Positions 42,429 through 56,182 of a stretch of DNA of 64,000 nucleotides are shown piece by piece. Under the pieces are notes generated by a model. It saw only the letters and a program-made list of their open reading frames with translations, searched no databases and was not told the origin of the DNA. Source of the DNA: Rebecca billardiae RCC1528 (taxonomy: Eukaryota > Protista > Haptophyta); contig OZ251243.1 of assembly GCA_965240325.2 (NCBI GenBank), forward strand, positions 558,001 through 622,000, read 5' to 3'. The position numbers were made by a program, and so were the translations under genes. Numbering within the stretch: the stretch's first letter is position 1; every line of letters starts with the position of its first letter.

Positions 42429-42447
42429 TAGATAGATAGATAGATAG
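42429..42447. repeat. (TAGA)n tract, segment 1
   Basis: Direct reading. Confidence 0.95.
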
Positions 42448-45400
42448 TAGGGGGTCCAGGCCTCCACTCCAGCCGTGACGATATTTAGCTGACGGCTTCA
42501 AATAGTGCTCTGATAATCGCGGCGCTCGTCAGGATGGTGTCTAATATACATATGAGCACGGCCCAGGTCGCAGACAGTGTAGATGCTAGGCTGATGTGCG
42601 CCCGCGGAGCCGCGCGGCCGCGGCGCGCGCACAGCGGCCAGCCGTGGGTGTCCGGGAGCAGCCGGAGCCGCGCGGCCGTTGGCGTTGCGGCGGGCGAGAT
42701 GTGGCGGCTGACAAGGTGCAGGAGAGGCGCGACCCGCGCTCACGCGTGCCGACAGAGCGCCTGGGTGGGCAGGGCCGCGGTTGCCGTGGCCTATCGACTC
42801 GTCGCAGGGGCCGAGGCCACGTACTCGATCGCGTACGTGGGCCCGCAGTACGTCTCGCCGCAGTCGAACTTCACCTGGCACAGCTCGCCGAGCGGGTCGA
42901 CCGCGACGATGCGGCCGTAGTACCAGCGCAGGCCGGTCGGGTGCTCGGGGCTCTCCTTGAGCGCGCCCTCCGCCTCCGCCCTGCGCACGAGGTCCGTCAC
43001 GGCGAGCGCACGCGGAGGGCGCGGCGCCTTGAGCACCTCGTGCGCGCTGCGCGAGAACGTCTCGGGCGTGTCCGCAGCGTCGGGCTGCACGTGGACGGTC
43101 TCGCCAGACACCTGGGTGACCTCGCCCGCGATCCACTCCTCCGACTCGTCGCGGCGGGCCACGACGCGGTCGCCGCGAGCGAGCGCCGCGTCCCTGGCCG
43201 CAGTGGTCACCTCCGCTCCCGCCGCCAGCCGCGAGAGCTCGTCCTCGCGCACCGCGTCAGACGCGGCCACCTCGTCGTCCAGCTCGGCGTGGATGGCCAC
43301 CTCGCCATCCTCGTCCTCACCGAGCAGCGCGGCGAACTCGACCCACTCGTCGGACTCCGCGGGCCAGCCCTTCCAGCGCACGCAGTAGACCCGCACGCCC
43401 CGATGCGTCATCGCACCGACGATGTGCTCGACTTCGTACTGCGTGCTGCTGCCCCTCGGCCGCGCGCGCCTCGGGCCAGCCACCCTGCGCGACGCCGCGC
43501 CCGACTTCGCCTTCATGCCGGCCGCGCGCAAGACCTCCGCCTCCGTCACGTCGAGGGCGTAGGCCATGACGAGCGTCTCCAGGCGCGACTTCTTCGACGT
43601 GTTCTTGCTGATCAGGATGTCGTAGCGGCCATCGAGCACGCGCACGCAGCGCACCTGCTCGAGCAGCTGCTCGCTGCTGAGCGCGCTGAACTCAACCCAC
43701 GTGCGCACGCGCACGCGCTCGAGACGCTCGCGCTCCTCCGCGAGCCGCTGGGCGACAGCAGCGGCCTTGGCCCGGAGCTCAGCGAGGAACGCCTTGTCCG
43801 CCAACCCCTTGGCCAGCTTCTGCGCAGTCGACGACCCGTCAAAGGCCTCGCGCTCGTGCGCGAGGAATCGCATCGAGCCGTGCATCTCCTCGGTCTGCTC
43901 CTCGTCCCACAGGTTGAAGAGGCGGCGGTAGAACGGGCCCGTGTCGTTCAGCTTGAACTGCGCGATCGAGCAGGTGGAGACGTCGTTGCGCGTGACGGCG
44001 GAGTCGACGATCGTCTTGAGGATCGAGAACGAGCGCTCAACAGGCGTGTTGCGCGACGGCATGTTGTCCCGCTTCGCCTCCTGCCACGGGGCGAGGTTGA
44101 GGTTCTTGCCGCCGAACTTGTCCCAGTGCGGCTTCTCCGCCTTGTAGACCTCGGAGTCGAGCTCGCCGTGCGGCGCGAGCATGGTCTCGCAGTGGTGATG
44201 GTGGTACGCGCGCGCGCCGACGCGGAACAGCCGCTTGTGCCACTCGACCGCCTCGTCGCTGACGATCCACTGGCCCGTCATGCTGTCCTGCCGGCTAAGC
44301 TTGCGGCGGATGATGTCCGCGCGCGGGTCCCTGTGGTGCTCCGCAAACAGCATCTCGGCGCCGGTGAGGAACGGGCCCGGGTCGTCACCCCAGCGCACGA
44401 AGCAGGCGTACACGCGCTGCGTGATAGGCGCGAGCTCTCGCACGTGCGCGACGGTCGTGTACGCGTGCATCACCGGCAGGTAGATCTCGAGGTAGAAGAC
44501 GGCGAGCACGCACAGACACTTGTGCACGGTGTCGCTCCCGAGCATCTTGATCAGGTAGTTGCGCGTCTTGCCGCCCTCTTCGCCCTGCCTCTCCTTCATC
44601 ATCTGGAGGAAGTCGAGGATGCGGTCGCGCCAGAGCACGATCGCGATCGCGTTCTTCTGCTCTCGGCACACGGCAGCGTCGTGCGCGGGCACGGGCGGGG
44701 ATGGAGGTGAGCGAGCGCAGTCGCACGCGGCAGAGTGCGCCGCGCGCGCGGCCGCGCGCGCGACCCGCGGCCGCGCGAGCTCGCGCTCGGCACGCGCGCG
44801 CGCGCGCTCGGTCGGATGCGCGGCGCGCGCACCCAGAAGACGCCGTTGCGCGAGCCGTGGATGGCGCTGAAGTCCTTCATGATGCTCTTCTCCTCCGGGT
44901 CGAGCTTGCCATGCGCGAGCACCCACTCGATGAACGCGTCACCCTTGGCCCAGTCCTTCTCCGAGAAGGGCGAGAGGTACACGCACAGCCGGTAGATGAA
45001 GTGCCAGATCGGCGAGTCGAAGAGCCAGACGCCCGTGCGGAACTTCTTCGCGTCGGGCGACTTCACCTTCGTGCCGCTCTGCAGCTCCGCCGCCTCAGCC
45101 AAGAAGGCCGCGCCGAGCACGTCGGTCGCAATCGTCATCAGCTCCTTGCCCATCGCGTCGAACGTGTTGACGAGCGCGTGCTCCATGCAGTTGCTCCACA
45201 TCGTCGAGAGCATCACCGTGATCAAGAGGGCGGAGGCGCCGCGGAAGAGGAAGCGGCCGAGCGCGGCGAGCCGCGGGTGACGCGACCAGTTCTGCCGCTC
45301 GCGCTGCTCGGCCTCCTCAGGCGTCGAGGGTGACACCGGCGGCGCGCGCGCGGCGCCGCCCACGTGCTCGCTCGAGGTCGCCGCCTCGGGCTCGGCCAGC

Positions 45401-55406: not shown

Positions 55407-56014
55407 ATTGGGTAAACGCGAGCTCCGAGCGTCTCGAGCCCTGCTAAGAGCTCACCGGCGCGTCCTCGGGCGCGTCGTCGATGTTGACCACGAGAGGCAA
55501 CCTCCTTCCCTTCGCTCCTTTACGAAGACAAGCTAACCTCCCGCCGACCTTTTGGTCGCGGGGTGACCACGTCGCGGCCGGCTCCGGGGAATGCGTTACC
55601 TTCCCGAAAACCGCCCGTCCCGACGTAACTCCCGGACGTCCTCGTCCGTCCACCCTCAGCCGGATTCCCACTTTTCCGAAAGTGGAAATCCGGATGGACT
55701 CCCACGATGGCGTCCGGGCCATGCCCGTGCGACGTCACCGTGCCGCGCTGCGCCGGGCCGTACCGCCCGCGCACGCGCCGCGTCCGTGTCGCTCCGCGTC
55801 CGCGCTGCCGCGTCCGCGCTCCGCGTCCACGTCGATCCGCGCCAGCGCTGCTGCGCTCGCGCTCCTGCCGCCGCGCGCGCCGCGCGCGCGCGCCGCCAGC
55901 CAGCCACTGCTCCGTAGCTGATGACGCCGGCCCGCCTGGTGCGGCGCCGGCCCTGACGTCCCAGCGGCGACGCCATCTGCTGAGATGCGCGCCCCAGGCC
56001 GCGTCAGCTCAACA
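55406..56014 (-). repeat. 5' LTR (609 bp), termini TG...TA
   Basis: Minus strand begins TGTTGAGCTG and ends CCCAATA. Confidence 0.95.
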
Positions 56015-56182
56015 GATAGATAGATAGATAGATAGATAGATAGATAGATAGATAGATAGATAGATAGATAGATAGATAGATAGATAGATAGATAGATAGA
56101 TAGATAGATAGATAGATAGATAGATAGATAGATAGATAGATAGATAGATAGATAGATAGATAGATAGATAGATAGATAGATA
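56015..56182. repeat. (TAGA)n tract, segment 3
   Basis: Direct reading. Confidence 0.98.

Follow-up and report, generated by a model that had tools for sequence, protein, structure and literature searches.

The window, i.e. the whole stretch of 64,000 nucleotides that was analysed (positions 558001-622000 of contig 26, OZ251243.1, of the haptophyte Rebecca billardiae RCC1528), has an average GC content of 68% and belongs to a genome of 72 Mb assembled in 41 contigs. It contains a (TAGA)n microsatellite that is divided into three same-strand pieces by two unrelated mobile elements: an autonomous class II transposon with terminal inverted repeats (TIRs), hereafter the TIR element, and a class I long terminal repeat (LTR) retrotransposon of the Ty1/Copia superfamily, each flanked by a target-site duplication (TSD) made of the repeat itself (Table 1). 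The locus is non-coding, its flanks have 58-60% GC, and TA runs bracket both outer ends of the whole tract. This arrangement had been proposed in a preliminary description of the same DNA, with coordinates that proved correct to within 1 base; it was confirmed by Tandem Repeats Finder (TRF), which reports the three pieces, by direct reading of the junctions and by a deletion test.

In this test, in-silico removal of each element together with one copy of its TSD restored an unbroken (TAGA)70 tract of 280 bp. The TSD of the TIR element is the 7-bp TAGATAG and that of Copia is the 5-bp GATAG; the tract is restored solely at TSD lengths of 3, 7 or 11 for the former and of 1, 5 or 9 for the latter. 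Indeed, 7 and 5 bp are the lengths typical of the two families: a perfect 7-bp TSD was found in 11 of the 16 non-autonomous relatives of the TIR element read end to end, as well as in an autonomous paralogue (L002/L022), and a perfect 5-bp TSD in at least 18 Copia copies whose flanks are not repetitive, as established by combining the 8-nt flanks from pattern searches at both LTR ends. An accidental fit of both lengths to the phase would occur once in 16 cases. Since the repeat phase fits the TSD lengths measured on other copies of each family, the junctions represent real insertions and not an assembly join; two genuine, independent insertions of unrelated elements occurred in one pre-existing tract.

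Table 1. Features of the (TAGA)n locus and of the two inserted elements (positions in the window)
Feature	Position	Strand	Remarks
Left (TAGA)n piece	42429-42447 (TRF start 42424)	+	~5 units; TA run before
TIR element, left TSD copy	42441-42447		last 7 bases of left piece
TIR element, autonomous, class II, 6303 bp	42448-48750	-	TIRs and TSD
12-bp TIRs, TAGGGGGTCCAG and CTGGACCCCCTA	42448-42459 and 48739-48750		
TIR element, exon 2 (open frame B)	42794-44674	-	GC content at third codon positions (GC3) 0.91; conserved helical core, then chromodomain and SH3/Tudor-like repeats
Chromodomain in exon 2	~43337-43438	-	Pfam E = 4e-5, just under Pfam cut-off
TIR element, exon 1 (open frame A)	44833-47937	-	GC3 0.94; long coiled coil, then core
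Middle (TAGA)n piece	48751-48857 (TRF from 48750)	+	27 perfect units
TIR element, right TSD copy	48751-48757		first 7 bases of middle piece
Copia, left TSD copy	48853-48857		last 5 bases of middle piece
Copia (Ty1/Copia) LTR retrotransposon, 7157 bp	48858-56014	-	LTRs, RVT_2, CCHC gag
3' LTR, 616 bp	48858-49473	-	coding strand reads TGTTG...CAATA
Polypurine tract, GAGGGGGGG	49474-49482	-	abuts 3' LTR
Pol open frame	49510-53190	-	-1 frame relative to gag
RVT_2 reverse transcriptase	~50272-51048	-	Pfam E = 3e-34
Gag/pol overlap, ~400 nt	52782-53190		-1 relation
Gag-region open frame	52782-55406	-	CCHC zinc knuckle
5' LTR, 609 bp	55406-56014	-	
Copia, right TSD copy	56015-56019		first 5 bases of right piece
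Right (TAGA)n piece	56015-56190 (TRF from 56014)	+	44 units, 99%; TA-rich run at end
Short interspersed repeat copy, ~270 bp	41993-42291		137 bp left of tract

The preliminary description called both elements intact, and their sequence features are consistent with this: the Copia element has near-identical LTRs, a polypurine tract and gag and pol frames, and the TIR element possesses both TIRs and a two-exon gene. The latter was judged to be a cut-and-paste transposon from its TIRs, its fixed-length TSD and the occurrence of non-autonomous derivatives. The two exons are colinear with the 1619-amino-acid homologue P0004, and the protein of the element has about 1,660 amino acids. In exon 1, the core that follows the coiled coil carries conserved TD motifs and a C-x-x-H motif (CMEH), while the helical core of exon 2 displays an invariant E in VERSFS, an ERxFS-like motif. 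A chromodomain is also found at the C-terminus of four of the ten distant exon-2 homologues scanned; these four belong to the set P0003, P0005, P0007, P0008 and P0012. In P0012, part of the core is fused to a GNAT acetyltransferase domain, and this protein is possibly domesticated or chimeric.

Each exon was used as a query by itself, and not as part of a joined protein. An exhaustive HMMER search with exon 2 identified 17 relatives among 1.8 billion cluster representatives, and a transposase Pfam domain is present in none of them. Pfam analysis of both exons, with E values up to 10, returned just the Chromo and SH3/Tudor-like tails, and a PDB sequence search gave no match for the protein of the element. 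Exon 1 had no match in either a word-indexed homologue search or the ESM Atlas, where exon 2 produced weak leads to the hAT dimerisation domain (0.78-0.82). The AlphaFold model of exon 2, with a predicted local distance difference test (pLDDT) score of 79, was without a Foldseek match at a threshold of E <= 0.001, and its VIA matches did not exceed Z 5.2; the model of the exon-1 core, with a pLDDT of 44, was unusable for a fold search.

The C-x-x-H motif, the ERxFS-like motif with its invariant E, the TAG(G)G termini and the weak lead from the Atlas are suggestive of the hAT/P group, which also shares with this element the short TIRs and the presence of non-autonomous derivatives. The resemblance to hAT consists of the CMEH and VERSFS motifs and of the Atlas lead; neither a DDE RNase H-like core with an insertion domain nor the C-terminal dimerisation domain PF05699 was recognised by the Pfam and PDB sequence searches, and the 7-bp TSD differs from the 8 bp typical of hAT. 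The 7-8-bp TSD of the P superfamily agrees in length with that of the element, and the Drosophila P-superfamily element 1360 has a 7-bp TSD (PMC3276498, TSD table), to which the TSD described here corresponds better than to that of hAT; neither exon, however, had a Pfam match to THAP or Tnp_P_element, in a search that did not extend to the DNA upstream of exon 1. Unlike in hAT and P elements, the protein, of about 1,660 amino acids, combines a long coiled coil with a chromodomain tail, and lacks any Pfam, PDB-sequence or fold match. The catalytic core is thus unassignable to a superfamily and the element is left unclassified, as a member of a small transposase family with 17 detectable relatives.

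The Copia element shows the features of the Ty1/Copia superfamily: paired LTRs, a 5-bp TSD, a polypurine tract, a CCHC gag and an integrase located upstream of RVT_2. The LTRs are direct and near-identical, with short inverted termini; 607 of 608 aligned bases are identical (one substitution, 99.8%) and the two copies differ further by one 7-bp indel. The sequence following the 5' LTR was matched to no tRNA as a primer-binding site. The integrase core was recognised by a weak rve_3 match (E = 0.016), in the position expected from the Copia domain order. Unlike in typical Ty1/Copia elements, gag and pol are in a -1 relation, and the integrase and protease have diverged so far that Pfam does not recognise them with confidence; the gag/pol overlap of the window copy suggests a programmed frameshift, unlike the single open frame common in Copia.

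The preliminary description had explained the double hit by convergent, sequence-specific targeting of the microsatellite by both elements, and a genome-wide analysis of the flanks of the two families was performed. For the Copia family, 85 LTR starts were found in the genome; they resolve into 39 paired, full-length elements and 7 that are solo or truncated. Identity among the full-length copies scored is 95-98%, and the family is young and recently active. A TAGA-flank pattern, allowing up to 3 mismatches, was matched at either LTR end by the window copy alone (1 of 46), and the TSDs of the other copies share no motif with TAGA; elsewhere in the genome there are 2688 perfect TAGA 28-mers, (TAGA)7, for a total of about 11 kb. 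The Copia flanks are biased in base composition. Of the 8 nt next to the LTR, at least five are A/T in 38 of the 46 flanks, versus 10-11% in the background (P = 1e-28); at least seven are found in 15 of 46 (background 1.4-2.1%, P = 2e-14), and eight flanks consist of A/T only (background 0.7-0.9%, P = 8e-9). This excess survives a model of intergenic DNA with 43% AT (P ~1e-17). The core of the TSD is A/T in about 34 of 38 copies, and (TA)n is the insertion site of about 9 of the 46.

A sister LTR family, whose elements measure about 4 kb and which has 48 LTR ends (e.g. C27:407933-411949 and C38:301245-305241), has a terminus, TCGTCAGCTCAACA, that differs by one base, and is possibly derived from the Copia lineage as a non-autonomous form; at least 8 of its approximately 27 outer ends are adjacent to A/T only, for the most part (TA)n. 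Thus, the Copia family and its sister have a strong preference for AT-rich targets, with about 20-30% of the copies in (TA)n. At C21:1075971-1083337, beside a full-length Copia, the end of one LTR runs straight into the start of another (CAACA|TATTGGG), forming a tandem LTR-LTR junction.

The family of the TIR element comprises about 21 copies, including that of the window: a 1.79-kb non-autonomous relative with the same TIRs is present in about 19 copies, 16 of which are readable end to end, and an autonomous paralogue, 72% identical and with a 7-bp TSD, is located in contig 7. Neither the 16 fully read non-autonomous copies nor the paralogue have TAGA or any simple repeat at the insertion site; the window copy is the only one of about 21 in TAGA. 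The mean AT content of the TSDs is 50% and that of the 50-bp flanks 43%, compared with 32% for the genome; at least four of the seven TSD bases are A/T in 10 of about 21 copies, which is compatible with DNA having 43% AT (P = 0.16) and not with the genome average (P = 5e-4). Around the insertion sites, 2.5% of the DNA consists of AT-rich simple repeats, hence 0.5 of 21 copies are expected inside one, and the probability of at least one is 0.41. This family therefore exhibits only the AT enrichment expected of intergenic DNA and no preference for repeats. Among the 16 non-autonomous copies, seven have an AT-rich simple repeat no more than about 300 bp away and at least five carry other repeats in their short flanks. 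A clean 7-bp TSD is wanting in five of the 16 (left ends L009, L010, L013, L018 and L020); in several such copies a recognisable duplication is offset from the left TIR by 3-6 extra bases, which may be filler or the footprint of repeated excision and insertion.

With none of the 45 other Copia copies and none of the approximately 20 other TIR-family copies in TAGA, most copies of both families lie outside the repeat, which is the outcome that the preliminary description itself had named as refuting, and this despite about 11 kb of TAGA elsewhere; TAGA-specific targeting is therefore refuted for both. The idea that the two families converge on microsatellites is likewise not supported, as the TIR family shows intergenic-level AT only and its other copies are outside simple repeats. 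Targeting survives in a weaker form, as a preference of Copia alone for AT-rich DNA and (TA)n; neither the specificity for TAGA nor the participation of the TIR family is retained.

The locus is probably best explained by two independent recent insertions, one of an AT-preferring Copia and the other a chance landing of the TIR element in the same AT-rich island. The target was a 280-bp (TAGA)70 tract bordered by TA runs, in a short intergenic island that is rich in AT and in transposons, within a 68%-GC genome. As in many LTR elements, the Copia integrase would prefer AT-rich, often alternating-TA targets; in a genome so rich in GC, AT-rich spots are scarce and often consist of simple repeats, and insertions would be funnelled to them. 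TAGA, with 75% AT, would be one such spot and not a recognised sequence. The TIR element, which generates a 7-bp TSD, belongs to a family that enters ordinary, moderately AT-rich intergenic DNA, and one of about 21 copies inside a simple repeat would be the chance expectation. We infer that the Copia bias arises at integration, not only through the loss of harmful insertions, and that the TIR element landed in the tract by chance. On this account the locus is a coincidence, and a likely one given the AT preference of the retrotransposon and the permissiveness of the intergenic island. If (TA)n constitutes 0.3-1% of the genome, an estimate from a small sample, TAGA (about 11-15 kb) represents 2-6% of the AT-rich simple-repeat DNA, and the probability of one TAGA insertion among about 10 simple-repeat insertions is roughly 0.2-0.45, by arithmetic on these sampled numbers.

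Some points weigh against this explanation. Under uniform insertion the presence of one Copia in TAGA has a P of 0.007, therefore some attraction to AT-rich simple repeats is needed, and two hits in one 280-bp tract have an estimated probability of about 1% or less for this particular pair; it is only the screening of many families and of more than 1000 windows that makes the double hit unremarkable. The 46 outer LTR flanks were read as 8-nt pattern matches and not as full sequences, and the background A/T frequencies derive from 170 kb of the window and of other loci, not from the whole genome. Moreover, one assembly cannot separate integration bias from purifying selection, and the chromatin-reader-like domains predicted in the transposase could guide it to its target.

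The last point is the basis of a quite unlikely alternative, in which the chromodomain and the SH3/Tudor-like repeats would draw the transposase to silenced islands of transposons and simple repeats, so that the TIR element landed beside Copia or the neighbouring repeats for that reason and not by chance. The chromodomain itself (E = 4e-5), its conservation in four of ten distant homologues, and the proximity of seven and at least five of the 16 non-autonomous copies to AT-rich simple repeats and to other repeats, respectively, agree with such guidance; however, plain intergenic insertion or retention in a compact genome gives the same proximity, and the non-autonomous copies are beside simple repeats, not inside them. 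A broader possibility, also rather unlikely, is that AT-rich simple-repeat islands are common landing pads, for which unrelated elements each evolved their own route: Copia would reach them through a sequence- or shape-directed integrase and the chromodomain/Tudor transposase through chromatin reading. If so, the double hit would be a symptom of a genome-wide convergent use of the same niche, not a coincidence.

By comparison with the explanation based on an AT-preferring Copia and a chance TIR landing, it is very unlikely that selection only has shaped the pattern, i.e. that both families insert at random and that AT-rich intergenic insertions are those that survive in a gene-dense genome. 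The genome is indeed compact, its AT-rich islands are intergenic, and selection is sufficient for the mild bias of the TIR family; yet the Copia bias is at the nucleotide scale, in the 8 nt abutting the LTR and in the A/T core of the TSD, it far exceeds the 43%-AT intergenic model, and the family is young, as indicated by the identity among copies and between the LTRs of the window copy. The convergent (TAGA)n-specific targeting by the transposase and the Copia integrase of the preliminary description, with TAGA as a safe-harbour pad, is hardly credible: the position of both elements in one tract, the TSDs made of the repeat and the improbability of a Copia in TAGA under uniform insertion are in its favour, and are outweighed by the absence of the other copies from TAGA and of any motif shared between their TSDs and this repeat. 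An assembly artefact, in which reads were mis-joined across an identical microsatellite, is extremely improbable. Long perfect repeats are classic sites of mis-joining, and a search for an empty-site allele or haplotig, such as the preliminary description had envisaged in the other haplotype, found none, as each unique flank occurs once in the assembly; on the other hand, the phase at all four junctions matches the family TSD lengths, all pieces of the tract are on the same strand, the tracts measure 19-177 bp, which is short compared with long reads, and the assembly consists of 41 contigs for 72 Mb.

A loose preference of this kind has precedents. In Drosophila, AT-rich palindromic target motifs (ATAT/TATA) are general among LTR elements and have been attributed to the flexibility of the target (Linheiro & Bergman 2012, PMC3276498); the 412, gypsy and Idefix clades have, like the Copia family described here, a short TSD with an A/T-only core and many insertions in alternating TA (PMC3276498). 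In both cases the integrase appears to follow a loose motif or DNA flexibility, instead of recognising a long sequence. Differently from the Drosophila elements, the present family belongs to Copia, has a 5-bp TSD and resides in a 68%-GC genome; because the background is GC-rich, its loose preference leads to a concentration of insertions in (TA)n tracts and in the scarce AT-rich sites.

It is the non-LTR elements bearing an endonuclease that show strict microsatellite specificity (Kojima & Jurka 2015, PMC4640811), in agreement with the statement of the preliminary description that such targeting is mainly known from this class; R4/Dong, HERO, Togen and others are named in PMC4640811 as microsatellite-specific non-LTR retrotransposons, with reference to Kojima & Fujiwara 2004. 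For those elements as well, simple repeats are harmless landing sites in compact genomes. Nearly all copies of R4/Dong, HERO and Togen are found in one repeat type, through a sequence-specific endonuclease; by contrast, of the 46 Copia copies analysed here one occupies TAGA and about 20% occupy (TA)n, through what is probably an integrase-based mechanism. A literature search on transposons and microsatellites of Diacronema and the Pavlovales found nothing relevant. Among DNA elements, rice Micron targets (TA)n.

The locus is thus an ordinary, if neat, site of nested insertion, and no TAGA-recognising mechanism is revealed by it. Of wider significance is the 39-copy young Copia lineage: in a 68%-GC genome, AT-rich DNA accounts for more than 80% of its insertion sites and (TA)n for about one fifth; this organism may represent a natural system in which to study how a loose integrase preference becomes effective safe-harbour targeting in compact genomes.

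The surroundings of the tract are consistent with this picture. AT-rich islands occupy 9.5% of the window, are spaced about 6 kb apart and usually contain a simple repeat. Upstream of the locus there is a HIRA-like WD40 gene (~34.9-38.4 kb), and open frames with high GC3 resume at ~56.7 kb. The short interspersed repeat to the left of the tract has at least 40 genome copies at about 80% identity and marks the locus as a transposon-rich intergenic island; a tRNA scan, made for a tRNA-derived repeat or target, found none, nor any tRNA-like part in this copy.

Further repeats are present at 38.9-39.7 kb of the window. Positions 27-391, 38899-38989 and 39622-39710 match flanks of the unrelated loci L014, L004 and L012 at 90-99% identity, which indicates further interspersed repeats in the window. 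Finally, in the region 12679-13057, the runs (TA)24 and (AT)17 stand about 300 bp apart; the DNA between them looks unique and contains an exact tandem duplication of 25 bp (12778-12827), with (AC)n/(TG)n runs close by, and the whole may be a small element within a (TA)n tract.

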